The translations under genes and the position numbers were made by a program. A stretch of 64,000 nucleotides of DNA from Octopus sinensis (taxonomy: Eukaryota): contig NC_042998.1 in the NCBI RefSeq assembly GCF_006345805.1, positions 86,304,001 through 86,368,000 on the forward strand. Reading direction: 5' to 3'. Shown in pieces: positions 15,428 to 56,400 of this stretch (positions are counted from its first letter, which is position 1; each line of letters opens with the position of its first letter). The notes under the pieces are model-generated. The model was not told where the DNA came from, made no database searches, and worked only from the letters and a program-made list of their open reading frames with translations.

Positions 15428-15493
15428 CTCCCTTTCTCTGGTAAGGGACCACCCATGTCATTTTCATCCAAACTGTTGTATAATGGATTAACC
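15428..15493 (-). CDS. Cadherin-related gene exon (cytoplasmic NPLY / SLDEN motif); last exon identified
   Basis: Acceptor atatttttcag, donor ag|gtatgt. 66 nt, phase 2 to 2. VNPLYNSLDENDMGGPLPEKG. No stop is reached, so the gene continues downstream. Confidence 0.88.
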
Positions 15494-15653
15494 CTGAAAA
15501 ATATTTATATAAAACACAAATAAATTTTTTGAAGAAAAAGTCCATGGGTTATTGATAAATTAATATGTTTTTTCAGAGTTTTACTTTACAAGAAATATAT
15601 AAAAAAATTTCTGAGAAAATGCCTCTTTCTCTTATGTCACTGACAGTGTAGAC

Positions 15654-18600
15654 CAGTGTTTTCCAAACTTTTCATGCCAAATTGCAATATCACCCACCTA
15701 TTGGCCAAAAAATGCTCCATTGCCCACCTATGTAAAAAAAAACCTGACATCCCCCAACACTAAATCCCCTAGGAGAATCTCCCCTTGTATCATTTGACAC
15801 ACACACTATACTGTAGACTTGTTGCCTCGTTAATGCCATCTGGACTAAATATGTGGTTGTTTACAAATCTATTGTGGGTTTAGTTTTGCCATTAGTGTGA
15901 ATAAAATTCTAATGTTAACTCTATATTATGCAGGCAGATTAACTTCAGTAAACTTGTGCTTTCTTTTACACTGATTTCTATTTTCCCCAAATGAACCATT
16001 GAACAGAACTACCAATGCAAAAATAATTAATGATTGTATTATAAAAGAGAAAAATACAACTTTTTAATGAGAACCATGTCTGGGGCAATGCAGCTAGTGC
16101 AAATACATTCAGTCTCAAACTTGTCAATTTTAGCACAAGTCTACTCGTTGTGTTACTTCCAGTTCAATTCTTTTATGGGAGTGTAAAATTCCAATATGGC
16201 TAAAACCAGATTCAACCAGGTATGAGGTAGGAGAGGCAAGCAAAAGTAATTTCAGATGTTTCCGCAGATTGGGGTAGGAATTCAATATACCTTGATGATA
16301 CCACAAACCTTCTTTGCCATTATGGCAATAGCACATTGTGGTGTCATCATCATTTTGTAATTCTATCAATTCCTTCTGTTTGTCATCCTCACAAATGACT
16401 GCATCAAGCTCAAACGGATTGTTATACCAACTTGGCATATTCAGCACAATAACATCCTGAAATTGCACTATCATGTTTGTGCAATGACTGCAAATAGATG
16501 TTATATATAGTTAAATCTTCAACAGCCAATTCATCTTTGAAAAAATTTTGAAATGTTAGTCTTATACAGCACCAATTTCAAAATGAAGGTAGTGATAAAT
16601 GATTTACAATCAATGAGAGTTTTCCTGTTTCCTTGCAATAACTTATTCAAATCATTCAATTTTGTGAATATATCACAAAGAAAAAAGTTATCGCACCTTA
16701 CAGTCATCAATGAAGCATATAGTGGAATATCTTCAAAGAAAGATATGATTATATGAAATAGTTCAACAAAGTGTAAAACACAGTTTCCTTTTGACAGCCA
16801 CCTCATTTTGGTATGGTATAAGACTTTAGTATAGTCCTCATCATTTCTCAGACTGAGTTGACAGAAAATTTGATAAGACAAGGGACTGGACTTCAATTTG
16901 TTCACAGTCTTGATAATTAACTGTAGTGCATCATCCACTCTACTGTTCACATTTTTTGCCACTAAATGCAACTGGTGTGTCAAGCAATGAACAGTTAGTA
17001 TCTGGTGGAAAATTTCTCTGTGAACAGCATTTCCTCATAAGGTTGAAGGTCTTCGCTGAAATACTGAACATATACCATATCAAACATTGATTGTCAACAA
17101 CAGTTGACTCATCCCCTTGCATTCAAAACGCTGGAGAATATTGGTGAGCTGATGTTTGACATCTTTGGCCATTTCGTCGATGCGTCAAGAAATCATTTTA
17201 TTACTCAGTGGGATCTTCATAATGTTATCAGGATTTTCATGCATAATGGTTGATAAAATCTTTTTAATAACTGGGCGAAGTAATGTTTCTCTAGTTATGT
17301 GAGACTTCCCAGACTTAGCAACAAGCAATGCAATGTTGTGCAATGCAATCAACCCATCATTCTCTTGCTTACTAGTTTCTCGGAGTATTAGCAACAAGCA
17401 ATGCAATGTTGTGCAACGCAATCAACCCATCATTCTCTTGCTTACTAGTTTCTTGGAGTAGTCTGTTGAATGTTTGTTTGCTTTTTGAAAGAGGTGCTCA
17501 GTTTCAAAATGTATGAATGCTTTGCATCAAAGTGATACTTCAAGCATGAAGGTTTCATCAGTTCATTGGTCAATGTTTGATGGCAAAGAAGGCACATTGG
17601 TTACAGACAGTTCTGAGGAGAGGCAATAAATTCAAACAATAAATAATCCCTACTGTACTGTCAACAAATTTTCTTGACTGGAGGCATCAGTAAAGTAAAA
17701 CTATGAAAATGAATTTCTACGGACAACGTCAGAAAGGCAGTATGGTATTCCCAAAGAGAAGAAGTTGATAGAGTAGAGTCAGATGACATGTCTTTACTGG
17801 AGCAAATACAAATCTAGTTTGTTTGGCTGCCAGCTTTTCAAAAATTGAAGTTATTGAAAATTTTATAATTTGGCACATTAATATACCTTTCTAAGCTAAA
17901 TTGTTGGTGTTATTAAACTTTTTCCAGAAAAATGTTTTTAAAAAGTTATAGAGGTTTAAAGTTTGGTCATTTTCACCCAGTCAAGAAACCCAATTTCAAA
18001 GCTGTCATGTTGTGCATGGTTGCACATTTTGTCAACAACCTGAAAATAGCACTTGTATTTTGATATGAGACTGTAGAATTACACACAGCATATAATCCTT
18101 CATAAATTTTTTTTGTTTTTCAGAGTTTTCAGAAGTTTTCATGAATTTGTATTCTATACATAGGAATTCATAGGATTATGCAAAAAAAGGAGAAAAAATT
18201 GTGGTGGAGCATGATTTAAGGCCTAAGCCTACTTCACTGCTATTTTTAGCACATATGACAACCATCTCAATGACGGTGCAACAAAAATATTTGATCGATA
18301 AACAAGTCTGCTTATTTTAAATACAAAGGATGTTTCATGCGAGTAGTCAAATCGATAAAAGTGCATCTGTATTCTACAGTTGCCTAGATATGAAACCATA
18401 GAATTACGCATGACATATAACACCTGATAACTTTTTTATTTTTCAGAAAATTTTTAGCAAATTTGTATTCTACACGCAGGGCTTCATAGGATTATGCCAA
18501 AAAGTAAAAATTGTTGTGGGGTGTGATTTAAAGCCTAGGCCTATTTGGTTGCTATTTTTAGCACATATGACAACCATCTCATTGACTGTGTGACAAAAAT

Positions 18601-18855
18601 GATAAACAAGTTGAATGATAAACAAGTTCACTTTTTTAATCTCATGCAAGAAGTCAAATCGATAAAAGTGCATCCTTATTCTAGATATAAGTAAATGCAG
18701 ACTTAATTTCTAAAAATGCTTTGTCACTCATAAAATGCTCGAATTACCCACCAAAATCTCAAATCACCTATCATTTTCTAGAAATTCACCCATCACCCAC
18801 CTGTAAGTTGAAATTGCCCACTGGTGGGCGATATCAATCACTTTGGGAAGCTGTG
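15654..18855 (-). mobile_element. Full-length decayed hAT (Buster/Charlie-type) transposon
   Basis: TIR cagtgttttccaaa / degenerate tttgggaagctgtg. 8-bp TSD gtgtagac (15646-53) / gtgtaaac (18856-63), matching nnnTAnnn. Transposase remnants: BED-like CLLCHQTLTNELMKPSCLKYH (ATG 17687), HTKMRWLSKG and PTSYLVESGFS. Confidence 0.88.
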
Positions 18856-19920
18856 GTGTAAACATATGTCAACCTTATTGACAGTGTAAACAATGCAAGC
18901 CTATAAAACTTTTATATTTGGATAACGCAAAATTAATGATATGCACCTTGAAATGGAGTTTCAAGTATTGAACAGTTACTTTTTCTTTGCTAGCTTAGAA
19001 ATTAGTAGATGTATAAGACAGAAGTTCTACCCCAAAACACACACCTTAATTAGCAACAAATTGCAAATAAATATTCTAACTGCTTTGAATATTCTTTGGA
19101 TCCTTCTATTGTGGAATGAATTATTATGAAATCAGGACTTCTAAATGCAGACACTGATGCATGAATAGATAATTTACAGTTGGATGCTTTTCTATTGATA
19201 AGTACTCAACAGTGAAAGAGCGTTGGAACCTGTTACAAAGTTATGCTTTCTAAAAGGAACATCTAATTGCTACAACAGATTTTGAGCAGACCTACAAACA
19301 GAAAGTTTGTTTTGGTAAAATATATTATTAGAGTATCGGAATATACTACACACAATCCTGGAATGCACTGCAAAATTGCAGGCAGCTGGACAAGGAAGGA
19401 AGATCCGTCATTCACAAGGCATAAATCTAAAACATTATGGAATAATACATCTGTTTATGCTGCACAAATGCCTTGCAAAGTGTACTTTATTTCCTTGCTA
19501 CAGTCCAAAGAAACATGTTACTCAGAGTTCAATACAACTACAGTGATTGCTGTCTTTAACACAAAGCTACAAATATGTAGTGGAGAGAACTCAGATTGTA
19601 GACATGGAAGATATACCACAAAGCATTTTGTTTGATACTTCAACAATTCTACTGATCCTTAATAACAAGTTTCTAATTTTGGCTCAAGGCAAGAAAATTC
19701 AAGGATAGGGCAAGTGACTTAAAACAATACCAGTACATGACTGGTACTTTATTTTATCAATTCTGGACTGATGAAATGTAAAGATTGATTGCTGTCATAG
19801 TTATGAAACCAATTATAACCTACATGTAATTAAATAATCAAATGTTTATAAAAAAAACAATAGGAGTTAGAAAGGATAGAGAAGAAGGAAAAAATGAGAA
19901 AGAGAGAAAGAAAAACATAC

Positions 19921-19978
19921 TGTCCCTCTGAAAACAAATTGGTTCCAGGATATACAACTTCAGGTGTATCATCTGATG
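19921..19978 (-). CDS. Cadherin-related gene exon (cytoplasmic PGTN motif)
   Basis: Acceptor tatatcattacag, donor ca|gtatgt. 58 nt, phase 1 to 2. (A)SDDTPEVVYPGTNLFSEG(Q). Confidence 0.9.
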
Positions 19979-20364
19979 CTGTAATGATATAAAAATTAAA
20001 TAATGACCATAGTTTTCTTTGACAGATAAATTTCTTTCATGCATTGAATACAAAGACAAACACAGTTTAGGATACTTAAACAAAATAGAATGTATAAAAT
20101 TGAACTACTAAGAAAAAAGCAATACTGAACATGAAATGACGTTCAGTTCAACAGTCATAGCATGGCCACAGCTCATGAGCTGAAACTAGTTGAATTCAAT
20201 TCAATGCATATCATCATCATCATCGTTTAACGTCCACTTTCCATGCTAGCATGGGTTGGACGGTTCAAATGGGGTCTGGGAAGCCAGAAGGCTGCACCAG
20301 GCCCAGTCTGATCTGGCAGTGGGCCTGGTGCAGCCAGCCACAGCTCTGAGCTGAAACTAGAGAG

Positions 20365-20404
<40 letters not shown>

Positions 20405-20564
20405 ACAGTATTAATAAAATAGGAGATGGAATGTGTAATAGACTTTATTGAGTACAACACATGTTTCGACCCGTTATCTATGAATAACAACAGGTAAGTG
20501 AAACTGTGCCGGTGCGTTACTTATCATCTATTTATACATTTTGTACAATTTCTTCATTTTATAT

Positions 20565-20637
<73 letters not shown>

Positions 20638-20654
20638 CATGTGTATATACATAT

Positions 20655-22190
20655 ATCATCATCATCCTTTAATACTCATTTTCTATGCTGGCATGGGTTG
20701 AGGGCTTGACCAGAGCTGGTAAGCCAGAGAGCTGCACTAGGTTCCAATCTGATTTGGCTTGGTTTCTACAGCTTGATGCCCTTTCTAACACAAACAACTT
20801 TACATTGTATGTGGGATACTTTTAACGTGATATTGGCTGAGCGTTTTTACATGGTACCAGCACAAGCGCTTTTTATGCAGCACCAGCACAGGATTCATGC
20901 AGGCCAATCATCTCCAGCAGGGGATGTAGCCTTAACACTTTTGCTGTGAAGGACAGGTCTTCTTGAGTACAGCAATGTGCCAGGTATTTCAGTCCTTTGT
21001 CATCTCATATGAAAGTTGCAGTGTTCTGAGGTTATCGTGTCCTCGTAGGTCTCCCTCTTCCACGAGTTCCATCCACTTTGAGTGAGTGGCACTTCTTAAT
21101 GGAGCTACTGACATCCATCCATATCATATACTCAAACCAGCACAGTCTTCTCTCTTGGCTGCATCTAATTCCTCCTGTGCCTAACTTCTCTCTCAATATA
21201 CTAACACTTTGTAACACATGTACACTTATATTACACATTCAGTGGAGCAAACTAGCCTCATTCCTCTTGAGCCTTCACATGTCCTCTGCATTCTGGGCCC
21301 ATGTCTCACTACCATGTAGAATTGCTGTCCATATGCATGCATCATAGAATCTTTCTTTCACTCAGAGAGAGAAACCTTTGGTTGCCATCAGAGTAAAAGC
21401 TCTCTGAATTTTCTCTATCTTATTCTTATTCTAGCTATCACACTCTCCATACATCCTCCTCTACAACTAATTAGATCCCCTAGAAAGAAGAAATTATCTA
21501 CAATCTTTAAAGGGCCTCTGGGACATTTGAGAAAATCGATCTCTGGAGTATCTGTAGTTTTTATAAAGCTGTATGTTTTTTTCAACACTTTCATATATCA
21601 GGGAAAACACTACTGCATTTAACCCTCTATCATAACTCTCACAACTACTCACTTTGAGGTGTCTATAAACTAGCCATCCTCAGTGCATTTCTTTTCTTCC
21701 ATAGTAGCTAAAGAAGGTATTATCCTCAATGACTGATATAACAGTCACTGTCTCTCATTTACTGAATGTTCTCATCCTAAAAAGAATGTTACACTTTAGC
21801 ACAAAATATGTAACATGTCTGTTTATAGGTGTTTGCAAATCTTCTCCAGAAACAGAAATATTTTTTAGGAGCAAGCACAGCTGTATGGTTCAGATGTTTG
21901 CTTTCTAGGTATGTACTTTGGGTTCCCTCCAATGTATGACACCTTGAACAAACTATTGTCGATTGAATTTGGTAGATGGAAACTGAAAGAAACCTGTTGT
22001 GTGTGTGTACTTACACTCTGTCGAGTATGCACACTGACATTACACATCCACCGGATCGTACTGGCTTCATTCCTTGCGAGCTTACGCATATCCTCAGCAG
22101 CCACAGCCCATGTTTCACTGCCATGTAGCATGGCTGTTCGTACACATGCATCATACAGTCTACCTTTTACTATGAGCAAGAAGCCCTTTG
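20655..22190 (-). mobile_element. RTE-like LINE 3' fragments with (CAT)n-tailed 3' UTR
   Basis: GRLYDACVRTAMLHGSETWAV..RWMCNVSV and REKLG..IRCSQERRL..GRGRP. (cat)n tail near 20656. At least two interrupted pieces. Confidence 0.8.
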
Positions 22191-23245: not shown

Positions 23246-23261
23246 ATATATATATATGTAT

Positions 23262-23316
<55 letters not shown>

Positions 23317-23318
23317 TA

Positions 23319-23881: not shown

Positions 23882-23917
<36 letters not shown>

Positions 23918-25678: not shown

Positions 25679-26935
<1,257 letters not shown>

Positions 26936-27466
26936 TAAAAATTGAAGCACCCCAAAGGGCAATCAAAAAAGATAGATGGCATGACAGGCCTCGACTATTG
27001 GGGTCGACTAGAAAAGCTAAAACTCTATTCTCTCCAACGTCGTCGTGAGCGCTACATCATCTGCATGATGTGGAAAATATTCCATCAGCATTGCCCAAAT
27101 GATGTTGGCATCACCTTAAGGTACATCCAAGGCTTGGGCCCCGTGCCATCCGCCCCAAACAAAAAATCGCACTCTCATCTCATAACAACAATACGGCACA
27201 ATTATTTCACCTCAATTGGCCCCGCTCTCTTTAACACATTAAAACAGAAACTGACCCTATAGGGTTCAAGAAGTCTTTGGACAGATTCCTTCAAGAAATC
27301 CCGGATAAACCCCCTACACCCCGATATGTCTCTGTAAACATTACTCTCTACTTGAGTGGGCCATAGTGCCCAAATTCTGACTTGAAAGACTTCACCAGGT
27401 GGTGCTATTAGTTAGACATGGCCTGGGCCAATAATGGCCGAAACCTATCAAAGTATCAAAGTATAT
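26936..27466 (+). mobile_element. CR1-like LINE 3' end with (ATCAAAGT)n tail
   Basis: DYWGRLEKLKLYSLQRRRERYII..WK. A related copy lies at about 55672-56170. Confidence 0.8.
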
Positions 27467-27510
27467 ATACATATACATATACATATATATATATATACAT
27501 ATACATATAT

Positions 27511-27560
<50 letters not shown>

Positions 27561-27580
27561 TATATATATACAGATATACT

Positions 27581-27615
<35 letters not shown>

Positions 27616-27729
27616 ATATATACATATACATATATATATATATATATGTATACATATACATATATATATATACATATATATACATATACATATATATATA
27701 TGTTACATATACTATATATATATACATAT

Positions 27730-27760
<31 letters not shown>

Positions 27761-27924
27761 CATATACATATACATATACATATACACATATACATATATA
27801 TATATATACACATATACATATATATATATATTACACATATACATATATATATATATATACATTACATATACATATACATATATATATATATATGTATATG
27901 TATATATATATATATTATGTATAT

Positions 27925-27959
<35 letters not shown>

Positions 27960-28243
27960 TATGTATATATGTATATGTATATGTATATATATATGTATTG
28001 TGTATATGTATATGTATATGTATATATAGGTATATTATATATGTATATGTATACATATATTATATGTATATGTATATGTATATATATGTATATATATATG
28101 TATATGTATACATATATATATATTATATGTATATGTATATAATATATAATGTATATATATATATATCTATATATATATATATATGTATATGTATTATACT
28201 TTGATACTTTGATAGGTTTCGGCCATTATTGGCCCAGGCCATG

Positions 28244-30396
28244 ATATCAGCAATGATAGTAGAGTTATAGAACCAAACGATAGTGTAGGAATACCGACAA
28301 ATGATAATACTACTTTAGAAGATAACATCAACTGCAATAATGATAACATTATTTTAGATAGCAGCACCAATAATAATAATAATAATGAAAGTAGAGCTTT
28401 AGAACCAAATGAAAATGTAGGAATACCTATAAATGATAATACTGTTTTAGATAATAATATTAACTACAATAATGATAGAGTTTTTTTAGATAATAACAAC
28501 AATCAAAATCATGATAAATTTACCCGCTCTGCTTCGAGCAACAGTAATATAAAACTTCTATCCTCAAGTATTCCACCTCTAATTATAATGCCCCTAGATG
28601 TAACTGCAGAATTAAATCAAAATGCCGGCCCCTGATTTATGCGGGTTAATTAACATAATCTATAAGTGCTCCGTAACCACAGATAATAATAAGTTCTCTT
28701 ATGTTGGATGCACTGTAAATTTTAAACAGAGATTGAATAATCATCTCTCATCTTTTAAATTACGTCATAAGGCTGATAGCACTACTCTTTCTAGTAAAAT
28801 TTGGGAACTAAAAAACATAATATCAAATATAACCTTAATTGGGAATTAGTCAGAAGAGCAAACCCTATAAAAATAGCAGAGTAGGCTGCCAACTTTGCTC
28901 CATGGAAGCATTCGAAATACAATGTATAAAAATAATGGAGAAATTCAATTAAACAGCAGAATTGAACTTGGAAATTCTTGTATACATGCTCGGTTTAAGA
29001 CTCTTAATATTTTAAATGATATTTTAATCATATCTCAATTGATAACTGTATACTGGAATCATTTTACATAAAATTCATTTTGACTTACATATCACTCCTA
29101 CATAGTATATTATATATTTAACTAGAAAGATAAGTTCTAACTAGCTATGATTATAATTTTTCTCTCTCTGATGGTACTATTTAATACTTATTGACTTAAA
29201 TTATTTATTGATTTATTTCTATTGGACCATATTATTAATAGATTAATTTTATCTCCATTTCTTAGTCTATTTTTTATCCCATTACATTTAGTTAGTTAAT
29301 TCTCTTAATTTCTTTTAACTTTTAAAATTAATTTCTGCTAATACCAGACCTATCGTAGTGTATTGTGATGTGATATAATTTATCAAAATAATATAATATA
29401 ATATAGTGTAGTGTATTATAGTTTAGTATAATAATAATATAATTGTTTAATTTCATTTAATATAACTTTATGTATGTATTATAGTTTAGTATAATAATAA
29501 TATAATAGTTTAATTTCATTTAAAAACAACCCCATTTTTCTTTCCTTTCTAATGACCTCTTTGTAACCTGACAATCTATTAATAGTAACATTTATAAATA
29601 AAGAAATAAATTTGTTGACCTCAGTTCGAATTTGTTCCAAACAAACTTAGACTTTTTGTTAGTATCAATTGTGCCCATCCCCTTAGCTTCCCCTTTCCTT
29701 TCTCTTTGACAGCTTAAATAGCAGTAACTGATTAAATTCCTACCCCCTTCCTCCTCTTTCTGTGATTCTTGTATATTTCATTAACTACCTGAACCACTAC
29801 AATAAGGCTGTCATTTTTTGCTTCTCATTCGGACTCCCTGATATTTTCGCATGATTGTACCCTAAATCCCTCCACAAAACTGGATTACGAACTATAAGGA
29901 TACACAAATTTTGTAAGTTCAAGACTTTTCATCAGATCTCCAAAAATCGAACTTATCTGCGATTCTTGTTAATTTCAATAACAATCTGTTCCTCCACACG
30001 ACATGACAGTCACTATCTTTTTACTCAGACTTTCCTCTACATGATGTGGCAGTCACTTGCGCCTCTTACTCGGATTTTCAGAAATTTTGCATGACTGTAT
30101 CCGAAAATTTCTTCATACAACTTGATCAAATATTCAATATGAGCTATATGTAGACATGCATAAATTCTATAGGTTTAAAACCTTTCATCAGATCTCCATG
30201 AATCGAACTTTCTTCAATGCAGTTAATCCTACAACCCTTTTGTATCTACCCCTTTTGATGTTTGGGAATTCTCTGATATTTTTTCGCTGACGAGTACGAG
30301 CCATCTGTATTCACTGCATTTTTGTAGCTTATTAAAGATGTCCTCGTACGAAACGATCGTACCGAGATTTTAATCCATTCTTGTTGCTTTTTTCCC

Positions 30397-30397
<1 letters not shown>
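28244..30397 (+). mobile_element. Penelope-like element 3' part: GIY-YIG endonuclease remnant, AT-rich UTR and pLTR with hammerhead
   Basis: IIYKCSV..SYVGCTVNFKQRLNNHLSSF..STTLSSKIWELK (ORF 28622-28849), then KPYKN..CQLC in a shifted frame. The terminal about 870 bp is homologous to 8983-9858. Confidence 0.85.
30284..30366 (+). ncRNA. Type I hammerhead motif, same family as 10054-10141, with one G missing from stem I
   Basis: CUGACGA 30287-93; GUACGAG/CUCGUAC; GAAA 30350-53; CGAUCG-UA; CCGAG. Confidence 0.75.
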
Positions 30398-30430
<33 letters not shown>

Positions 30431-30492
30431 ATACATATACATATATATACATATACATATACATACATATACATACATATACATATACATAT

Positions 30493-30527
<35 letters not shown>

Positions 30528-30621
30528 TATATATATACATATACATATATATCTATCTATACATATACATAATATACATATACCTATACATATATATACA
30601 TATACATATATATACATATAC

Positions 30622-30669
<48 letters not shown>

Positions 30670-30789
30670 TTATCTAGTTTTCAGCTCACTAGCTGTGGTC
30701 ATGCTGGGGCACCACCATTAATATATATATATAGATATATACATATACACACATAATATATAATTATATATACATATACACACACACAC

Positions 30790-32921: not shown

Positions 32922-33021
32922 NNNNNNNNNNNNNNNNNNNNNNNNNNNNNNNNNNNNNNNNNNNNNNNNNNNNNNNNNNNNNNNNNNNNNNNNNNNNNNN
33001 NNNNNNNNNNNNNNNNNNNNN
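32922..33021. other. Assembly gap (100 N)
   Basis: Run of n characters. Confidence 1.
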
Positions 33022-38095: not shown

Positions 38096-38773
38096 TCTGT
38101 ACACATTAACTATATACTTATATATACCCAGTACGCTCTGTAAAGTAATTGGTGTTAGGAAGGGCATCCGCCGTAGAAACCACGACGGAACGGACAATGG
38201 AGCTTGGTGCAGCCCTACCAGTTCCTGTCAAACTATCCAATCCATGCCAGCATGGAAAACAGATGATAAACGTTGACAATAATATATACATCATCATTAT
38301 CATTTAGCATCCCCTTCCATACTGGCATGGGTTGGACGGCTGACCAGGGCTGGTAAGCTGGAGAGCTGCACCAAGTTCCAGTCAGATTGGGCATGGCTTC
38401 CACGGCTGGACGCTCCTCCCATGCCAACCACTCCAAGAGTGTAATGGTTGCTTTTTATATAACACTGGCATCTGCCACAACTATGATTTCACTTGGCTTG
38501 ATTAGTCTTCTTCTGAAGCATGGCATAGTGCCAAGGTTTCAGGATACATATAATATGTGTGTGCATGTGTGAAGTGTGTAAAGTGTGTGTATATATATAG
38601 AGAGCTTCAGATAACAATCATGCAATTTCATATTGATTACACTAGTTAGAGGTTTTTGTTTGAGTATATAATTTTTACCTTGTATGTTCCAGGTGGAGCA
38701 TTCATAATTCTTGTTTTCATGACATCTAGAGGCATAGTGAGAGAGTTGCAATTGTACCTGCCATATGTATGTA

Positions 38774-38804
<31 letters not shown>

Positions 38805-38985
38805 GTATGTATGTTATATATATATATACATATATATATGTATGTATGTATGTATGTATATATGTATATATATATATGATGTATGTATGTATGTATATAT
38901 GTATATATATATATGATGTATGTATGTATGTATATATATATATATATGTATGTATTATGTATGTATATATGATGTATGTATGTAT

Positions 38986-39049
<64 letters not shown>

Positions 39050-40502: not shown

Positions 40503-42896
40503 TCTCTTATTATAAAAGGCAGATTTTATCTGCCTCCCAAACCATTTGTTTATTATACAAATCTACAATATAGAATTTCTTCAATTATAATTTACCTATC
40601 ATTTTTACGAGTAGAATACATCGGGTCGTGGCAGGTACAGTTTTTCCTATTTCACCCCCAATTAAGCAAAAATTAGAGAAAACTAACTATTTAACAATTT
40701 TTCTCTTTCAGTTCAAGTGATTCACTAATACCATTACCACTACACTTTCTCTTCCTTTCTCTTTGCAAGTGTGCAACGATTAAAGTGAAAGTATTTATAT
40801 AAAAGGGATGAACTGCTTCACTCATGCTATCACCATAATTTCTCCTACTTTCTCTTTGCAAGTGTACCTTAAACCACTACTCAAAAAAAACAACACAGCA
40901 AACAGAAACAAATAAATACATAACGATTTACTCCTCACACAATTTCTTCAATTACAGTTTACCTATGATTTTTTAAAGTACTTCCATTCAGTCATGGCAT
41001 ACAAAATTTCTTTCAATTTGACCCTCAATTAAGAAAAAATTCGAGAAAACTCAATATTTTAACATTTCACTCTTTCACTTCAAAGCCTTTACTCTGCCTA
41101 TTACTCCCACTTCCTCTTTACACACATAGACACGCAAATATATAAATAAAATTGTAAGCTAACATATGTGTGTGTGTGCGTGTGTGTGAGTGTGTGTGTG
41201 CATGTGTGAGGGTGCGTGTGTGTGTGTGTGACTGTGTGTGTGTGTGTGTGTGTGACAGGAATGACCCATTCAGACTGGTCATCCTTTTTGCTAGAAGATC
41301 ACCTATGCTACACCACTGGTTTTCAGTTCATATTAATCAAATTAATATTCACAACAAGAAGGACTATTCATTATAATACATCAGTTCCACACATTTACCC
41401 TGGTTCCATTTCGGACAACTGCACAAACATTTGCCATTTGACACATGTATGTAAACAAATTCCTTTCTTAAAAATTTCAATTCATTTTCTTTTTCAATTC
41501 ATACAAAGTTATTTAGGACGAATATAAGATCTAAAGTATATCCAAGTAGCAGAAAGATCGCCCAAAAGTGTATATAGATATTTAAATGTATTTATATATT
41601 CATCTATACACACATGTATGTATAATGTGTGTGTATATATTTCCATAGAGGTAACCATTCACTCCGCACAAAGTTTTTTAGGACGAAAATAACATCTAAA
41701 GTTATCTCTAAGAAGCAGAAAGATCGCCCAAAAGTGTATATAGATATTTAAATGTATTTATATATTCATCTATACACACATGTAAATGTATTTATATATT
41801 CATCTATGCACACATGTATGTATAATGTGTGTGTATATATTTCCATAGAGGTAACCATTCACTCCATACAAAGTTTTTTAGGACGAAAATAAGATCTAAA
41901 GTTATCTCTAAGAAGCAGAAAGATCGCCCAAAAGTGTATATAGATATTTAAATGTATTTATATATTCATCTATACACACATGTATGTATAATGTGTGTGT
42001 ATATTTCCATAGAGGTAACCATTCACTCCATACAAAGTTTTTTAGGACGAAAATCTTTATATATAAAAGAAAGGTTGTGTGTCTGTCTACTCCGATTTAG
42101 ATTCCTAACTACTCCCACATTTTGCGATGCAGTTTAACCAAAGGCGGGTATCTTATAGTCGTGATTCATATCGAGCCCTTCTGGGTATTAGCGCACGTCT
42201 ACGATGAGTCTACGATTTTACAAATAATTTACCATCATTTTTTCCCATTTTAATGCATATTTTTTTAAATAAAGGGAAGTAACTCTCAAACTTCACACCA
42301 ATATGCGTGCTCATATGCGACGTAATATCACATAAGCAGCATTTCCTCACACCCTCCTTGCACTTGGCGAAGGCAAAATACCAGGGGATGAAAATGGTAA
42401 TATTGCCATCGATTCCATTTGTACCATTGTTAAGACGCCTTCTGATCTCAGAGATGCAGTGTTCCAAGATCTACAAGCTAATTATCAGAATATGGATTGG
42501 ATTGGCCAAAAGGCTATACTGGCCCCGAGGAATAAAACTGTTCACCATATTAATGATGAAATGCTAAAACTCATTCCTGGGGAAGTCTATGTATATCAGT
42601 CTATCGATACAACTCCTGACCCACAGGATGTCATCAACTATCCAATAGAGGTACTCAATTCCTTTGAGCACCCCGGACTACCACCACACATTCTCAAACT
42701 TAAAGTTGCTGCCCCTATAATGCTCATCAGAAATTTGGTTCCCCCAAAACAATGCAATGGCATTTGATCGTTAAGTCCTTATCTCCCAGCAGAAACTTAT
42801 GTCAATATTTGCCTGAATAATCATCATAATTCAGTGCAATCATTAACAGTACTTTCAAGCAATTCAGCCCTGAGCAATGCCGGGCAATTCTGCTAG
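40503..42896 (+). mobile_element. Composite Helitron with a RepHel helicase fragment and internal minisatellite
   Basis: A|TC 5' ends at 40503 and 42054. Minisatellite of about 165-200 bp at about 41500-42050. ILAPRN..HINDEML..YPIEVLNS..GLPPHILKLKV..PIMLIRNL..CNG (42459-42767). 3' hairpin ccctgagcaatgccggg and CTAG|T at 42893-97. Confidence 0.85.
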
Positions 42897-47321: not shown

Positions 47322-49677
47322 CTATATATTAATGGAAAAAAATCAAACAGGAATTTAGTAGTTTCTTGATTTTCTATATATTTTCTACATAAAGCAAAGT
47401 AAAATTCATTATATACTTATTCATATGGTGGAACTTCATACAAATATATAAGTATCTTCTTATTGTCTTAGAAGGAACAGTTTGCCTTTAAGAAACACAT
47501 GCATTGGTTCTATTCTATTTCTTTACTCAACTAGAGATTCAATTAACCAATAAGCTAATTGGTTTTTCGAGAAATTGTACAGTCAGTCAATCAATCAGTT
47601 GGTTTGTCAAAATCTTTTCATCACCATTTTCCATCTTATCAAATTTGTTCCTTTCTCTGAGACTGCATACAGGAATAGAAAGTCCTTGGTGAAATAGAAC
47701 CAGTGTGTGTAGCTCTTATTAGCAAAATGACCCCCACCAAAAAATACAAACAACATCTGTTTCAATATACAATTTTGCATTATGAATCTTGCAAAAATGA
47801 AATAAAGGCATTTTATTTAATGTCAACATTTTCAATAATTCTAAGATCACCTTTACATATTTTTGATTTTTGGAAGCAAATAAAAATAATATTTGGTTGC
47901 CTTTACAGTACACAATGCTAAAATATATAATATATTTAGTTTAAAAGTCTAATGAAATACTTTGTGTTTTAATCTGCACTCTAAGAGTAAATAGTCAAGT
48001 ACTTTACCACTCAGATTTTGTGTAAATCTAATTTTCAAACACCTATAACATACTTCTTTTGCAAAATAACATGAGATTTCACGAAAGTCTCTTCATTGTG
48101 GATTTGCTAAGAGTCAGTTGAATCAAAGCATTTACACTCAGAATATCAGCCACCCTAAGTTCTTTAAATACCTAAGATGAATATAACATATAATTACTCA
48201 GTTATCTTTTTATCTTTGGCCTTCTAATTTGTTTTGTAAAACATGCAAAGTTACAACTACCAGCAAAATCTTAGAATACAGTAAGCTCACATTATGATAC
48301 TTGATTCTCTACAATCACATTATAGTATATAATACTAGCTTAGATTGAAGTATGGCCTATCTCTCAAACATTAAGTCAGTAAATTTCATGTCACAAGTTT
48401 CTTCAAGGGGAGCTGGGTGTAACTAACTTAATGAAAAAGAGTTTTCAATCACCAGTTCTTTGATTCAGTAATGAATTGTTCTAACCTTAAAACAGAGTTT
48501 CAAACTAACAAGCATTTAGTGATTATAACCCAGAGAAACACCACTAGTCGTTGATAAACTACAAAAATTAAACTGAAAAGCTTATATTTCATCCATTTGC
48601 CTAGTCTTATTTTGTAAGGGAATAAAAAAGGCAATAAATTTCAAATTTGTCACTAATTAGTCCCAAAAGGGGTTTTTTGTTTTTGTTTTTTGCAAAGAGT
48701 TTATATTTTCTTTTATTAGTTTAATCCAGAAGCATGGGCAATGCCCAAGACCTTTGCAAGACATTCAGGACTACTAAGATCGGTCTGATTAATATTCTTT
48801 TTCAGGAAATTTGGAGGAAAAAACATGTACAAGGATGCAATTTAAGAGGAGTGGCGTTCTGATAGAACTAGATATAGGGATTAGTGCAATGCAGGCAGAT
48901 GGATGGGGATGGTGAAAACAATATGGGAGATGAAAGGATAAGAGGCAAATGCACTGGAAGCGCCAGAGTATAAGTTGCATAAGACCAGCAATCTTCAAGA
49001 AACAGCAGCCAATGTAGTAGTGGGAGAAAAGACAGGGCGGAGACAGCATGTTTGTGGGCCAGAGCAGTTGTGTGATGGTGAATAACTTCATGTCAATGGA
49101 GTCAAATGGCGTTTTTGTGAGGATGTACATTAGAAATTATAGATAGCTATATTGACAGAATGTAGGAATTGCTTCATCACCATTTCACAGTCTACATAGC
49201 CAAACTCTGGCCATTTCATTCCATCTACCTGTGAATAGGTATAAAGCAAAGAGACAGATTACATCTGTTAACATCAAAAGCAGGGTTCAAACCATTATAA
49301 TTATAGCTTGGAGAGTGATGAGTTCTATCATGGCACATTTTACATATACAAGATGAGACAGTCTTCAGTAGGGCTCCTAGCATTTAACGGGTTATACAAC
49401 CCATAGCTACAGCTAAAAGGAAACAAATATAACTTGATATTACATACAAATTTAAAAATCTAAAAGAGCAAATGTTCAATATTTTACCTATTTGTATGCT
49501 GGACATTTTCTCAGATATATAGAACAATGGTTGGAAAGTAGGCTTTAGTTTGAACAGAGACTTGTGTGTAAACTAAGAATACAAAGCTATGCCTGATACA
49601 AAAGTTCTATCTCTATATTTTGAATAATATGTTTATTAATTTTAATACATAAATAGAAAACTAAAACTGTGACTCAC

Positions 49678-49746
49678 TTTAGAAGCTCTTTAGGAGGAAC
49701 TACCTTTTTAGTTGCATTTTTAACTGCAAATAAAACCAGACTTGTC
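49678..49746 (-). CDS. Cadherin-related gene exon (membrane-adjacent domain)
   Basis: Strong pyrimidine tract tcttctttttattttatcattgtag, donor aa|gtgagt. 69 nt, phase 2 to 2. TSLVLFAVKNATKKVVPPKELL(K), containing an N-glycosylation sequon (NAT). Confidence 0.85.
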
Positions 49747-50184
49747 CTACAATGATAAAATAAAAAGAAGAAAAATATATTCATAAAATTCAAAATAACA
49801 ACATTACACACATACAGAAACCCAATCAATCAGGTAGATATCACCTCGTCAAACTAAGTCACATACCCCCTTAAAATTGATCACAACACCGTAAGCTAAC
49901 TACCTTTCTCTCTCCCTTCAAACTATTATGATTCCTCCTTTTGTTTTACTTTTTGTCTTTTCTTTCTTCCCCAATCTTTTTTCTAGTATTTAGAGACATC
50001 TCCAATTATAGATGAAGGGACAAGTTTCTAAGTTCTACAATACAGAAGAGTCAAAAGGCCACACAAATCAAAACTTCTATTAAATTACACACACACACAC
50101 ACACAAAACCATGACTATATGACTGAGAAGCAAGTTTCTTTACCACACAGACAGGTGTGGTTGTGTGTATGCATGTATGTCTGT

Positions 50185-51070
50185 ACAAAGGCAAGTTAAA
50201 AGTTTTGCAATATTTACATACCGGTTAGTTTGCTAGGTGTTTCTATTGTATACCTGAAATAGTTCAAGCTTTGGAAGGTAATGCTGAGGTTGGTAGCATC
50301 ATGGTAGTGCACTGATGTGTTGTACATTGCTTCCCTCCACATGTGATTTGAATGTGCAATGAAGTCTAATTCAGGAATATATGCTTTGTGTTCAAACTGG
50401 GCCAAAAACATTTGTTGCACAAAATGTGAAGGTGCAGTTGATCACAGTACAGTAACCAGATGATTCAAGAATTTTCACTCAGATTGCAAGAACCATGACA
50501 ATCAGATAAGGTCAGGCAGGCCTAAAACCATAGATTCTGAGGCCATGCTCCAAGCTATAAAAGTAAATCCAGTAAGTAGCACTTGGAGAGTACAGGCAAG
50601 TTCAGCCTCTTATAGTCCAGTGTGGCTAGTCACCTTTGCAACCTCAGCAAAAACAACTGGAGCTGCTCAATTCAGCCTCATAGAATGAGCCCAGCTCATG
50701 TACAGAGCAAGTGAATGTTTTGCAAGGAACTCCTGGAAAATCTGCATAATCTGCAGTTCCTTAAGAGGATAGTAACATGCAATAGAATGTGAATATTTTC
50801 CACAATCCATGCATAAGTATTGATTAAGCAAGAGCCAGCTTCTGGAACCTGTCACAAAACATGAGCATTCTAAACACAAGGTGATGTTCTGCATGGAATT
50901 ATGAGGAGATAATTCACTATAAGTTCATCCCAGATGGTTGAAATATTGGTGCTAATCTGTACTCTAAACAGCAGGAGAGGCTTATGCAATTATGCAGCAA
51001 AGACACCCAGCACTGGATAACAGAAAGTGAGCTCTACTACAGCAAGACAATGCAAGACCTCATACCATTC
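50185..51070 (+). mobile_element. Decayed mariner element
   Basis: HSTVTR*FK..SGRPKT.DSEA (HTH region), LKRIVTC and QDNARPHT in broken frames. Boundaries are approximate. Confidence 0.7.
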
Positions 51071-51380
51071 AAACATATCCCTACATATTCCTACTCCACC
51101 TTCCCTATCCTTCCCATCCTATTCCACACACCCTCTCCCACATACCCCAACCCTCTGCCTACCCACAAGCCCCAACTCTACCCCAACCCTCAGCTGAACC
51201 CACACCCCACCCGTGCTTTCTCCACTCTCGCTTCTCCCACCACCCAACATCACACCACACCACACTACACCATACATTACACATCACATTACAACACACC
51301 ACCCACACACCCATCCCCACATTTTGTTTATAAAAGAACATTGTTTTTGTTTTGTTTTTTGTGGGTGGGGCTTTGAAGAC

Positions 51381-51425
<45 letters not shown>

Positions 51426-51552
51426 CAGACAGATAGATAGTCAGAGGGATAGAAAGATGAGTAGGGTAAAAGAGAGAGAGCAGGGCTATTCATTTTCCTA
51501 CCCACCACTTTTCATTGTATTGAAATGGGTTTTTTAAGGATTGTCAAAAAAA

Positions 51553-51587
<35 letters not shown>

Positions 51588-52992
51588 AGTAAAAACTTGT
51601 TTACTACTTATACCATTGCTTTGAAATGGTTTTTAGGGATGGTAAGAAAAGAAAGGAAAGAAAAAGAAAAAATAGGGAATAAGAAATAAAAAATAATAAA
51701 AAATGTTTTCCTGTCCTTTCTGTTTCATACTCATTGAGTTATATTTAGAATATATTCCTGTCATACATTTATTTATATATTTTTGGTAAGGTGTAGTTCT
51801 GTATGAAAATACATTAGTAAAATAAAAAAAACTATATATATCTCATACCCATACATATGTACATACATAGAAATGTACTCTTTGCTTCTTTTTTTTCTCT
51901 TTCAAACATTTAATTTCAAAGAGAATCTTTTTATGAAGTGTAGTTCCACTGCCTTTTGGTATTGCAGACAATGCAAGACCTGTGTACATTTGTAAAAGGG
52001 AAAGATTTTGAACTTTCCGTCTCCACATATTTCTAGGTGCTTACTCAATGGGATTTTTCATAGTTCTTCTTGCCAGATATGTACATCACACCTAACACTC
52101 TACACACACACACATATGCATGCACATATATACTTGAATATATCTACATACATGCAAGCATGTATGCATGCATAAATATGTACTTACATATACATACATG
52201 TATAAATATGTATGTGGATACTAATGTAATAATATATAATAATATATAGTAAAGCATTTAATCTGAAACTCTGTTATGTATGTTTTTGCACTATTCTTGG
52301 TTATAATGTCGACCCAATGACAAGTTTTTTTATCAGGCAACTATAATGCACTGATGGTAATCTTCTCATCTGAGATCAGCAATTAGCACATGACAATGGT
52401 TCAGCATATATTTACATCAACCGCTTTAAACCATGCAGTGTTTATTTATGTAAATTGTCCTCATTGCAAGGGCAATAAATTCGACAAAACTGGCATAGCT
52501 GGATGCAACTGTAAATTCCGTGAAGGATCAGAAGAATTTGCTGAAAGTGTATACAGTTGATAGGAAGTCATAATGGAAATGATGGTGTAACCACCAAAAC
52601 TGCTGCTTTTATACTATTATGGGGATGAAGTTTTGAACTAATTTGGAAATATTTACATGAAGAGTCTAACAAACCTATCAGATTCCTCGAAATTTTCACA
52701 GTGGCCTCAATTATCAATTCTGAGAGTGATAATGGCTATTTATATCAACCAGAACACAAGCAGGTATAAATCTGCAGCAGATAGGGTTGCACATATTTTC
52801 ATCATCTGATTCAAAGCAAGTACACAGTGCATGTAAATTTATGCCAGCTGATGTTATGGGGTTAATTACAATGGTTTCTGCTTCATTATGTATTTTAATT
52901 CCATCTTTAATTTTATATGAAGACTAAAATTGCTGAAGGAACGCACACGCACACACACAGCAGTAAAGCCATTATATAAAATAAGAAAATAC

Positions 52993-53085
52993 CTTAGAGG
53001 ATCAGGTTCACCTTGACCATTTTGGGGGACATCAAGTTTGCCAGGAACAATTTCATATTCCTCTCCCACAACTGATTGAAGAAAT
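52993..53085 (-). CDS. Cadherin-related gene exon (membrane-adjacent domain)
   Basis: Acceptor tatgtttctag, donor ag|gtattt. 93 nt, phase 2 to 2. FLQSVVGEEYEIVPGKLDVPQNGQGEPDPL(R), in frame with both neighbouring exons. Confidence 0.85.
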
Positions 53086-54106
53086 CTAGAAACATATACA
53101 CATACAAATATTAGAGATGGAAGAAGTAGTATTAATAGCAAAAGCAATCTTTATACCCTACAAAACATGGATATATTGTTAAAGCACTGACTATTGTGGT
53201 ATTTGAGAGGTCTTCTCATATAGTTATACGATGCTAAAAGCAGTCACATATAACATAGCAGACAAGAACTTCCAGATCACATAATTTCAGAATTCTGCAC
53301 TTCTTCAGTGGCTGGTGCCCAGCTGTAGAAACTATGCCAAAGCAGACAACAGAGCTTGGCGCAGTCCTCTGACTAGGTACATATGTGGCTGTGTTGTAAG
53401 AATTCTGCTTCCTAACCAAAGTAGAATTGTGATTATTACTCAATAGGTTCTCTCACATAATCTTCTCATGTAAACACAAATTTTATTCCCCTTTTGCTCA
53501 TTATGTAAAGTTTTTATAATTGCTCATAACTGTGACTAAATTTTTTCACTCATTATTTAAGTACTACAACATCAGTTTACTTTCTCCTACTAGCATATTC
53601 TCTTTCAACATACTTCCTTCTCCACAACCTCCCCCACCACTCCTTTATCTCAATGTACATCTCCTGCTGCTTTGACAGACCAGGTGGCATTCCCAACTAA
53701 TCTATTATCTGCTTCACATAAATTTGACCACCCATGACGTTCGTTTTGAAGAGGATGGCTTTAACTTCATCTTCTTGCCCCCTCCCTCACTCTCTTTCTC
53801 TCTGTTTCTTCACTTCTATCCCTGTTCTTTTCTTCTTATATTGTAGAAGTTCTTCCTCTGTCCCATACATCACGTTTGCCAATCTTCTTTTGATGAGAGG
53901 AGCCAGACTTATTGCAATACCTTCATGTGACTGGTAACTGGTTACATACCCATGACGTTTTGCACATTTCACCAGAAAATTATGATTATTATGATTATTT
54001 CATAACACTGAGCTCCTTGAAACAGCTGTCATGCTAAGAAATTACCTATTCTATTTTGTATTTTTTGTGATCCATGTAAATACACATATAGACAGACACA
54101 TACACT

Positions 54107-54138
<32 letters not shown>

Positions 54139-54778
54139 TAAATAAATATAGACATATATCAATGTCTGTGTACATGCATGTCTGTATGTGTACACATATA
54201 CATACATGTGTATGTGTACATATGTGCATGTTACCAAATGATCCGCTGAAAAATTCACAGAATGAATATGCACACAAACATGAATATATGCAGAGACTTT
54301 TGCATAAATATATACACAAACTCATAAATATACAATCCTATGCATTCATAATAATATGTGAAAAACATATAAAATTCTGCAATCAGGCACACACATATAG
54401 GTAAAAACAAATCTCACATCACTCTATTAAATGTCACGTGACTCTATTGTGTTCTATTGTTTTATCTAAGATGGAGACAAATCCTAATGTCTCAGGATAC
54501 AGACTCAAATAATTAATGAGAGATATCTCTCTGAACATGAAACCAATGATAGTCTGGTTACCCCATGAATAAAGAATATTTATCCACTGTGTGTACACGT
54601 GCGCGCACACACACACACACAAACACACAGTTTGATAAGTGCCAGCACATGAAACTCTTGAGCCTTGAGTCACTCTATAGCTTCTGCTGAATATCAATAA
54701 AAAATATATACACACATTCATATTTTGAGTTCTATTTTCCCTGTCTGCATCACCAGACCTATACATATATATATATTT

Positions 54779-54985
54779 AAATGGGGAAGGCCAGTTTATG
54801 GGATTGCCTTAGGTTTCCCATCCATGAAGAGTGTAGCTTTATGGCATATCATCAGATCCCCAAAACCAGTTGCCCCATGACCTCTTTAAAATATTTTGAA
54901 GAGGTCATAGGCCAACAGGTTTTTGTGATCTGATGATACACCACAAAAAACCTAAGGTAATTCCATAAACTGGCCTTCCCCATTT
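54779..54985. mobile_element. Fold-back MITE, imperfect hairpin over its whole length, with TTAA-like flanks
   Basis: aaatggggaaggccagtttatgg..ccataaactggccttccccattt, plus inner arms atcatcagatc/gatctgatgat and atgacctctt/aagaggtcat. Confidence 0.75.
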
Positions 54986-55671
54986 TTAATATATACTGCT
55001 CTACATCTTAAAGTGTGCTAGAAAGCAAATATATTTTATTCCACATGGGTGGAAATATAGGAAAAATAGAAGTTGAAAATGCACTGAGAATAGTTAAAAT
55101 ATTTTTTATTACAATATTTAAACCTTTAACCGGTTTCACAGTTTACACTGATTTTCAAAAAGTTCAAATAGAAACACGTTGCTTGCTTCTGACTAGTGTT
55201 TGAAGTTTGCCTTATTTTTATATGGAGTTTAAGGCTCAAATTAGTATATGTATTGAATAGGATTTGATTGTAGGACTGGTCCTAGAAACTTTTGTAGGTT
55301 CCCTGCTTCATTTGTATGTTAGTCTCAAGTGACAATGCTTGGCATTGTAAGTTAAGATTGACACAGTTGACTGAACAAGTCCAAACAAACAATGCTCTGA
55401 ATGTTTTCTGTCACATCATTAAGTTTATAACCTCTTGTAAGTTTCCCACTATGTTCATATCATGTGACAGTATATTTTGCATCTAAAAAGAGGGCCAACA
55501 TGGTTGAGTGAACATGTTTAGTTATAATCTAGACAGACCTAATTTAATCTGTCTGGAGGGAAAGTGGCAGGAATCATATATAGTCCAACTGGTTAAAGCT
55601 TCAAATATTTTAATAAAAAATATTTTAACTATTCAACTTCTGCTTTTCCTATATATACATACATACATATA

Positions 55672-56170
55672 TATATGTATAGGATCGATTATTGGGATCG
55701 CCTTAAAGCCTTGAAACTCTACTCTCTTCAGCGTCGCCGTGAGCGGTACATCATTTGTACGATGTGGAGAATATACCGCCAATTTTGCCCAAATGACCTG
55801 AACATTAGCTTCAAGGTTCATCCAAGACTGGGACCACGGGCCATACATCCCCTGCCCAATTCAAGATCACAGCATACATGTACACTGCAACATAATTTCT
55901 TTTTCCTCAACAAGCCCTGCCCTATTTAACATTGTCCCGAAAGAGATCAAAGAGGAAAAGGATCCCATCAACTTTAAACGAAGTCTGGATAGATTCCTTC
56001 AAAGAATACCAGATAAGCCACCCATAATTGGATACAACTCACCCAACAAAAACTCATTACTTGAATGGACCATAAACAAAACTTGACTTAAACAGGATTC
56101 AAATAATCCTATCAGGTGGTGCTATTAAGTTAGACATGGCCTGGACCAATTTTTGGTTGAAACATATCTA
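55672..56170 (+). mobile_element. CR1-like LINE 3' end
   Basis: DYWDRLKALKLYSLQRRRERYII; same 3' UTR as 26936-27466. Confidence 0.8.
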
Positions 56171-56311
56171 AGTTTATATATAGTGTTTATATACATATAT
56201 ACATAAAAATATATATGTGCACTTACACAGACACACACACACATTCAAACAATACTATATACAATGTAGTTTTGTACTTATAGATGTAAGAAAAAATATC
56301 AGTGTCCTTAC

Positions 56312-56400
56312 TTTATAAATTCTGGGTTTTGACTCCTAACTTCGTCAATTGCCTTTGTAAATACAATTTTGACCTCATTAGCTTCAGATAAAATATGAAT
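56312..56400 (-). CDS. Cadherin-related gene (CDHR2/Cad87A/CDH23-like), first identified exon; start of the membrane-adjacent domain
   Basis: Acceptor ttttgctttttacag, donor aa|gtaagg. 89 nt, phase 0 to 2. Translates to IHILSEANEVKIVFTKAIDEVRSQNPEFI(K), resembling the segment after the last EC repeat in Cad87A/CDHR2-type cadherins. Confidence 0.85.

Follow-up and report, generated by a model that had tools for sequence, protein, structure and literature searches.

A 64-kb DNA window probably holding the 3′ third of an octopod cadherin gene with a CDH23-type membrane-adjacent domain

Results

The 64,000-nucleotide stretch of DNA analyzed here (the window; contig NC_042998.1, positions 86,304,001 to 86,368,000) very probably contains the 3′ third of a real multi-exon octopod gene for a non-classical, single-pass cadherin of the CDH23-like/Cad87A-like kind that bears a membrane-adjacent domain (MAD). 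Nine exons on the minus strand encode the MAD, a transmembrane (TM) helix and the cytoplasmic tail. The gene is an ordinary gene of a known kind, and relatives of it are already in the databases.

Exon structure of the gene

With boundaries read from the DNA around each quoted peptide fragment, eight exons on the minus strand (608 nt in total) were spliced into 202 codons without a stop, with phases 0-2-2-2-0-2-1-2-2. Every one of exons 1 to 8 showed an AG acceptor after a pyrimidine-rich tract and a GT donor. The eight GT-AG exons and phases proposed in a first-pass annotation were thus reproduced exactly, and all the peptide fragments that it quoted mapped to the minus strand. Its figures of about 202 stop-free codons, about 1.5% coding sequence (608/40,973 over the span 15428-56400) and one intron of about 19.7 kb (intron 6; 19,669 nt, 100 N included) were likewise obtained. 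The span 15428-56400 that it gave was right for the eight exons but incomplete at the 3′ end: the last exon listed ended at a donor, and a ninth exon had been missed. The nine exons are as follows.

Exon 1, 56400-56312, minus strand: 89 nt, entered in phase 0 and left in phase 2; start of the MAD, IHILSEANEVKIVFTKAIDEVRSQNPEFIK
Exon 2, 53085-52993, minus strand: 93 nt; end of MAD helix 1 and strand 2, FLQSVVGEEYEIVPGKLDVPQNGQGEPDPL; tblastn E 1.9e-12
Exon 3, 49746-49678, minus strand: 69 nt; MAD strand 3, RTSLVLFAVKNATKKVVPPKELL; AG/GT sites, tblastn match
Exon 4, 47321-47255, minus strand: 67 nt, ending in phase 0; MAD helix 2 and last strand, KILDTQTVLNAEKFQDFSVENVK; AG/GT sites, tblastn match
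Exon 5, 45157-45033, minus strand: 125 nt; extracellular linker and TM helix (approximately 45121-45050), NFIIFIAVIAVLVCILIITIILFY
Exon 6, 39688-39648, minus strand: 41 nt; basic juxtamembrane motif R-YSRKLRAAKTTVY
Exon 7, 19978-19921, minus strand: 58 nt; ASDDTPEVVYPGTNLFSEGQ, with the conserved P-G-T-N motif; AG/GT sites, tblastn match
Exon 8, 15493-15428, minus strand: 66 nt; VNPLYNSLDENDMGGPLPEKG, with an NPxY-like motif; GT donor in phase 2
Exon 9 (terminal), 10814-10571, minus strand: 241 coding nt plus the stop codon TAG at 10573-10571

Each of the nine exons was picked up separately by tblastn, and similarity halted at the predicted boundaries. In exon 1, which has a GTAAGG donor, similarity (E 2.6e-8) stopped exactly at the acceptor; exon 5, with AG/GT sites, was matched at E 2e-11 to 2e-15. 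Exon 9 (AG acceptor, phase 2; E 5e-31 to 7e-28) was first found using the Octopus bimaculoides gene LOC106877917. It encodes an acidic and Asn-rich tail ending in DVEATEV, and an AATAAA lies 43 nt past its stop codon. The complete 3′ model therefore comprises nine exons, 852 nt and 283 aa, with ATEV at the C-terminus.

The same nine exons, with identical lengths and with AG/GT sites at the same positions, were present in an O. sinensis genomic locus on chromosome CM016860.1 that contains no N (L001; the counterpart of exon 1 is at 29450-29538, with the same sites). The NCBI isoform X2 of the O. sinensis gene, which reads RRYTRKL at the exon 5/6 junction, agreed with the splice model residue for residue, and exon 6 fits both this isoform and the family consensus RYxRKLRAAT. 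Isoform X1 reads RRLYRKL at the same junction (L001 48387/52877); no donor/acceptor pair within approximately 60 nt of L001 gives that reading.

The gene had also been described as hidden and not recovered among the open reading frames (ORFs) listed for the window. Eight of the nine exons were indeed absent from that list, but exon 2 lies inside a listed 93-aa ORF (52866-53147), the only exon to do so. "Hidden" means here invisible to a prokaryote-style, stop-to-stop ORF list. Because the large introns are full of long interspersed nuclear elements (LINEs), DNA-transposon remnants and (TA)n, only approximately 1.5% of the span is coding and such a list misses the gene. The window is AT-rich (20-42% GC), with a single run of N at 32922-33021. 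No second copy of any exon, as expected for mutually exclusive exon arrays, was found in the window by tblastn or locus comparison, and arrays of alternative exons were rejected on that ground. An Rfam scan of the window returned no RNA family.

Homologues

An exhaustive HMMER/phmmer search of 1.84 billion representatives gave 40 matches. The best match was O. sinensis XP_036370891 (400 aa), which aligned over 283/283 residues with 76% identity and no gap (E 2e-129). A partial protein of Argonauta hians (GAB1597288; 1,136 aa) covered all 283 residues at 43-45% identity, and the O. bimaculoides protein (LOC106877917 / XP_052821843) showed 71% identity to the window model. Matches with E 1e-13 to 1e-4 were to cadherins of 1,100-2,300 aa from gastropods, bivalves, a brachiopod, an annelid, a hemichordate and arthropods. 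Relatives in Argopecten, Haliotis, Lingula, Saccoglossus, Armadillidium, Caerostris and Lucilia are named "cadherin-23(-like)" by NCBI or JGI; other names were "cadherin-87A-like" (Crassostrea) and "CDHR2-like" (an O. sinensis paralogue). All such source names are automatic best-hit labels.

The similarity of the spliced peptide to cadherin membrane-proximal regions, for which the first-pass annotation had proposed a BLASTP/HMMER comparison, was borne out: a CDH23-type MAD was matched, and cadherin relatives were found from E 2e-129 down. The assignment to the cadherins comes from close relatives in O. sinensis and Argonauta, which carry extracellular cadherin (EC) repeats directly before the same sequence; by this comparison the window peptide is the C-terminal portion of a cadherin. 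Relatives that look complete have lengths of 1,300-1,950 aa, not approximately 3,350 aa; for this reason we do not file the gene as a CDH23 orthologue.

A word-indexed protein search with the 202-aa peptide returned O. bimaculoides LOC106877917 as the sole relative and overlooked O. sinensis and Argonauta proteins present in the collection. Since a search of this type misses relatives, the absence of an identical protein should not be read as meaning that the gene is unannotated in its source genome. Literature on Cad87A and CDH23 and on octopus cadherin-23 yielded nothing specific.

Membrane-adjacent domain

By profile and predicted fold, residues 1-106 are a ferredoxin-like MAD of the CDH23/PCDH15 kind. 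With the window peptide alone, the best phmmer match in the PDB was CDH23 (8TRI, residues 349-452), aligned end to end with approximately 21% identity (E 0.067). A profile of 32 relatives matched mouse CDH23 EC25-MAD28 with E 1e-31 and five protocadherin-15 MAD12 structures with E 2e-7 to 1.5e-4; the Nup54 ferredoxin-like domain was matched more weakly. CDH23 MAD28, PCDH15 MAD12 and Nup54 are the set expected from the paper defining the MAD fold (10.1101/460097).

A single-sequence AlphaFold model was poor (predicted local distance difference test, pLDDT, 56) and was replaced by a run based on a multiple sequence alignment. In this AlphaFold2 model (45 sequences), residues 1-100 were predicted to form strand-strand-helix-strand-strand-helix with pLDDT 78-89. 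The ten best Foldseek matches in the PDB were CDH23 MAD28, PCDH15 MAD12 and Nup54 only, with a clear drop afterwards; CDH23 MAD28 was matched with E 6e-7 and a root mean square deviation of 2.6-3.4 Å over approximately 100 residues.

Transmembrane helix and cytoplasmic tail

The protein has a single hydrophobic stretch, in exon 5 (mean Kyte-Doolittle value 3.6), followed by basic residues, and AlphaFold placed a helix at residues 117-158 (pLDDT 91-98). Hydropathy and the predicted helix together indicate type I single-pass topology, with a cytoplasmic tail of approximately 135 residues.

Tail motifs were taken from an alignment of 34 relatives. R-Y-x-R-K-L-[RK]-A-A-T, immediately after the membrane, is conserved among them and is followed some 15-25 residues on by [PV]-P-[GN]-T-N. 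An N-P-x-aromatic motif is also conserved (NPLY in the window, NPxY/F/W in relatives), and (N)SLDxN is often present in the relatives' tails. P172 is invariant and T174 nearly invariant in the family alignment, and the window protein retains nine of the nine residues that are invariant or nearly so. A C-terminal [ST]-x-[ILV] was found in 29/40 relatives. In the window protein the last residues before TAG are -A-T-E-V, a predicted C-terminus of the class I PDZ-binding type (S/T-x-hydrophobic). The order of MAD, TM helix, RKL motif, PGTN, NPxY/F/W and (N)SLDxN, previously called typical of CDHR2/Cad87A/CDH23-type cadherins, proved to be conserved, together with the C-terminal S/T-x-I/L/V after it, in more than 30 relatives named cadherin-23(-like), cadherin-87A-like or CDHR2-like. 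A profile search with the tail only gave 97 matches; Cad87A, CDHR2 and vertebrate CDH23 did not appear among their names, and nearly all were short fragments without a name.

Divergence from O. sinensis and paralogues

DNA identity between the window and O. sinensis was bimodal, forming a mosaic of 76-99%. Identity was 98-99% over 3.5 kb around exon 3 (window 51075-47602 vs. L001 39082-42616), with exon 3 itself identical at 69/69 nt; 94-97% around exons 6-8; and 76-88% around exons 1, 2, 4, 5 and 9, introns included. Intron sizes differed up to fourfold (intron 6, 19.7 vs. 4.9 kb). Comparison of the 283 codons gave dS = 0.081 and dN = 0.127 (dN/dS approximately 1.5, not significantly above neutral). 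By part, dN/dS was 1.05 in the MAD, 5.8 (the highest) in the linker plus TM helix and 1.47 in the tail. Differences were 85% non-synonymous, compared with a neutral expectation of 79%.

Further O. sinensis copies were compared with L001. A haplotig (L002) is 99.3% identical to L001, and the only coding differences were six substitutions, all in exon 3 and all amino-acid changing. They form part of a 250-bp tract (L001 40301-40539 vs. L002 approximately 1180-1421) with 11 substitutions in approximately 240 nt, five of them in the upstream intron; it looks like a short conversion tract. Diversifying selection focused on exon 3 was dropped as the main reading of this tract, given the five further substitutions in the intron 170 nt upstream and a probability of approximately 0.24 for 6/6 non-synonymous changes. 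In a paralogue (L003; VCDQ01000384.1, 12200-31954) the last EC exon and a different TM exon lie 3.1 kb apart, and the MAD exons are missing between them. Identity of this paralogue to L001 is 84-94% at exons 5-7 and rises to 98% from exon 8 on, and the 80 residues encoded by its terminal exon are those of the chromosomal gene.

Per-exon comparison with O. bimaculoides gave discordant affinities. A small gene family shaped by gene conversion is the simplest and likeliest cause of the mosaic, and the window may hold either another paralogue or the orthologue from another Octopus species. A stronger proposition is that the gene belongs to a small Octopus family of MAD-bearing cadherins that both exchanges sequence by conversion and diversifies fast outside a few fixed motifs. 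It is suggested by the 76-99% mosaic, the dN/dS of 1 or more, the MAD-less paralogue with near-identical terminal exons and the 250-bp hypervariable tract of exon 3; we regard it as unlikely.

Points against the identification and alternative explanations

Several points weigh against reading the window as the 3′ part of a functional cadherin gene of this kind. The Pfam model PF23206 (PCDH15-like domain) scored the window peptide alone at 15.4 bits (E 0.018), below the cut-off of 27. The same model gave 23.5 bits with Argonauta, and many arthropod relatives do carry PF23206; it was built on a more distant branch. The AlphaFold alignment consisted of CDH23-like relatives, and the matches by fold and by profile are thus partly dependent on each other. 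The window encodes no EC repeat, the full-length cadherin being deduced from relatives, and the gene model is built from genomic DNA and homologues. The roles of the tail motifs are predicted only. Finally, the dN/dS of approximately 1.5 fits relaxed constraint as well as diversification.

The last point bears on whether the window copy is a decaying, non-functional paralogue (an unprocessed pseudogene) of the O. sinensis-type gene. Such a copy could show the observed dN/dS and a non-synonymous share as close to neutral as 85% is to 79%, and the small family, with at least one other paralogue in O. sinensis, offers a setting for it. A decaying copy is nevertheless quite improbable: the 283 codons are free of stops and, compared with O. 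sinensis, of indels, 17/17 splice sites are canonical and positionally conserved, the invariant and nearly invariant residues, the tail motifs and ATEV are all kept, and the differences avoid conserved motifs.

The region upstream of exon 1 bears on another alternative, in which the exons encode a stand-alone MAD-TM-tail protein, an EC-less cadherin derivative transcribed from an internal promoter. No EC-repeat exon was found on the gene's strand in 56401-64000, either by reading the open stretches or by tblastn (word size 2) with the upstream parts of three relatives. These 7.6 kb hold a Tc1/mariner remnant and LINE tails. The lack of an EC exon there and the shortness of the octopod database models (191 and 400 aa) are both as a stand-alone protein would have it. 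However, exon 1 opens at an acceptor, in phase 0, without in-frame ATG context, and the frame upstream of it is intron-like. In O. sinensis, 17.7 kb separate the MAD exon from the preceding one, which encodes the end of an EC repeat, and one exon further upstream carries the linker DADDNPPIF; the O. sinensis model thus runs into an EC repeat over a 17.7-kb intron, and an intron of that size at this place explains the lack of an EC exon in the window. In the Argonauta model, approximately 860 aa in which Pfam recognizes seven Cadherin domains (E 1e-98) are joined to this MAD; the number of Cadherin domains is 6-11 in Lottia, Nucella and other relatives. The short octopod models begin mid-domain, which is typical of truncation. 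A stand-alone protein is accordingly very unlikely, and the EC-repeat exons of the cadherin gene would lie upstream of coordinate 64000.

Intron 6 and the assembly gap

The longest intron contains the only gap in the window. Its features are as follows.

Intron 6, 39647-19979, minus strand: 19,669 nt as written; holds the gap, two LINE fragments in the same sense and long (TA)n
Upper LINE fragment, 36142-33022, minus strand: CCCH-like start, Exo_endo_phos_2 endonuclease at 35906-34908 and RVT_1 at 34382-33479 (Pfam)
Lower LINE fragment, 32536-30832, minus strand: CCCH-like start and Exo_endo_phos_2 endonuclease at 31782-30835; 5′ part of a further copy of this LINE family

The gap (32922-33021) is separated by 6.6 kb from the exon 6 donor and by 12.9 kb from the exon 7 acceptor and sits within LINE-derived sequence, its upper flank being the broken 3′ part of one LINE and its lower flank the 5′ part of the other. 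The ORF of the upper LINE copy runs into it, and RVT_1 is present in the upper copy only; the endonuclease parts of the two fragments are 73% identical and in the same sense. Such LINE repeats commonly give rise to assembly gaps. Three relatives aligned over the exon 6/7 junction with no residue missing. Window segments above the gap (39738-39366) and below it (21609-20677 and 20211-19036) mapped collinearly and with unchanged orientation to intron 6 of O. sinensis, which is 4,933 nt long and free of gaps. Since both flanks are collinear with a single gap-free intron, the join is sound and the length of intron 6 alone is uncertain. The extra length of the window intron consists of approximately 5 kb of LINE debris and (TA)n arrays of up to 1.25 kb (TRF).

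That the exon chain is a chance concatenation of AG/GT pairs, which are common in 35% GC DNA and could join exons as short as 41-125 nt, or a scaffolding artefact at the N gap of the longest intron, is refuted by the E value of 2e-129 to an independent protein, the separate recovery of every exon, the same structure in the gap-free assembly of a relative and the collinearity of both gap flanks with one O. sinensis intron.

Other repeats in the window

Imperfect (TA)n arrays were found at 25684-28198, 30397-30673, 38763-39036 and 62000-64000, with a local GC content of 20-25%; their translation yields many "YIYIYI" ORFs in the ORF list. Upstream of exon 1, at approximately 61126-60143 on the minus strand, there is a frameshifted Tc1/mariner transposase remnant (DDE_3, E 1e-9) with the motifs HGGG..MIWG, QEDNAPIHT and WPPQSPDLN. 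An ORF of 102 aa in intron 5 (42459-42764, plus strand) matched the Pif1 2B domain (E 2.6e-10) and is probably a Helitron-type helicase remnant. Two adjacent ORFs in intron 7 (16130-16983, minus strand; 150 and 114 aa), with no Pfam match, may by eye resemble the C-terminal part of a hAT-type transposase. Downstream of the gene, at 3825-6330 on the plus strand, two long ORFs of a non-long-terminal-repeat retrotransposon, one of 489 aa (RVT_1, E 1.7e-28) and the other of 244 aa (zf-RVT), look like a fairly young insertion.

Discussion

Relation to known cadherins

The nearest counterpart is O. sinensis LOC115232682 (XP_036370891.1 / XP_029658562.1), which has the same nine exons, lengths, phases and sites, and the same MAD, TM helix, tail motifs and ATEV; O. 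bimaculoides LOC106877917 / XP_052821843 shares the MAD, TM helix, tail motifs and ATEV end. Among proteins of known structure, CDH23 MAD28 (8TRI) was the best match in sequence and fold, and it stands directly before a single TM helix, as in the window. CDH23 differs in its size of approximately 3,350 aa and its 27 EC repeats; full-length relatives of the window protein measure 1,100-1,950 aa. Like the window protein, it has an end of the class I PDZ-binding type, its C-terminus being ITEL.

The MAD12 of PCDH15 (also termed EL or PICA; 6BXZ, 6C10, 6C13, 6C14 and 6EET), considered together with Drosophila Cad99C, showed a weak PF23206 match and Foldseek E values of 1e-5 to 3e-4. PCDH15 is more distant than CDH23 MAD28, and its juxtamembrane region and tail do not align past the TM helix. 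The likeness to Cad87A and CDHR2 comes through the automatic names of relatives (cadherin-87A-like in Crassostrea, CDHR2-like for the O. sinensis paralogue). Cad87A is close in size to the lophotrochozoan relatives of approximately 1,900 aa. CDHR2 (PCDH24) is predicted to have a MAD10 (10.1101/460097).

The clustered protocadherins, a group expanded in octopus, also belong to the cadherin superfamily, and the window gene, too, is part of a small family with shared, near-identical tail exons. Clustered protocadherins, however, have the ectodomain and TM helix in one large exon, six EC repeats and no MAD, whereas the window gene spreads MAD, TM helix and tail over nine exons of 41-244 nt and is not a member of that group.

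Proposed mechanism

The tails of CDH23, PCDH15 and CDHR2 bind harmonin. For the MAD, the behavior established for PCDH15 MAD12 and CDH23 MAD28 (10.1101/460097; PDB 8TRI, 6BXZ and 6C14) is the basis of our analogy. By this analogy, the ectodomain would form a Ca2+-stiffened filament and a Ca2+-dependent link, and the MAD would sit on the membrane, pack against the last EC repeat, promote parallel cis-dimerization and be the mechanically weak element. From the tail sequence alone, the basic juxtamembrane stretch and the NPxY-like motif would be docking, adaptor or sorting sites, and the C-terminal -T-E-V would bind a PDZ scaffold. Such binding would connect the actin cytoskeleton of microvilli or cilia with the extracellular link.

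Annotation and significance

The first-pass annotation had warned that automated gene models could truncate or miss a gene of this layout, and the octopod models of the gene are in fact all fragmentary or misnamed. They include two "uncharacterized" proteins, one of 191 aa in O. bimaculoides that begins within exon 4 and one of 400 aa in O. sinensis that begins within an EC repeat; a 691-aa "protein dachsous" in which mis-splicing leaves out exons 3-6; and a "Fat 4-like" protein that is only partial. Such trouble is a routine problem of eukaryotic gene finding. LOC115232682, LOC106877917 and the "dachsous", "Fat 4-like" and "CDHR2-like" models are pieces of one MAD-bearing cadherin gene family, whose exons are dispersed among more than 50 kb of introns rich in transposons; the significance of the finding is mostly a matter of annotation.

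A correct full-length model would be needed before cephalopod cadherin diversity is counted, and also to ask whether links of the CDH23/PCDH15 kind are used by these animals in statocyst hair cells, photoreceptor microvilli or gut brush borders. As a lead on gene conversion in the family, the mosaic divergence between copies is a modest one. If it reflects selection and not conversion noise, the family could serve in the recognition of cells or individuals, which would make it a MAD-bearing equivalent of the diversified cephalopod protocadherins.

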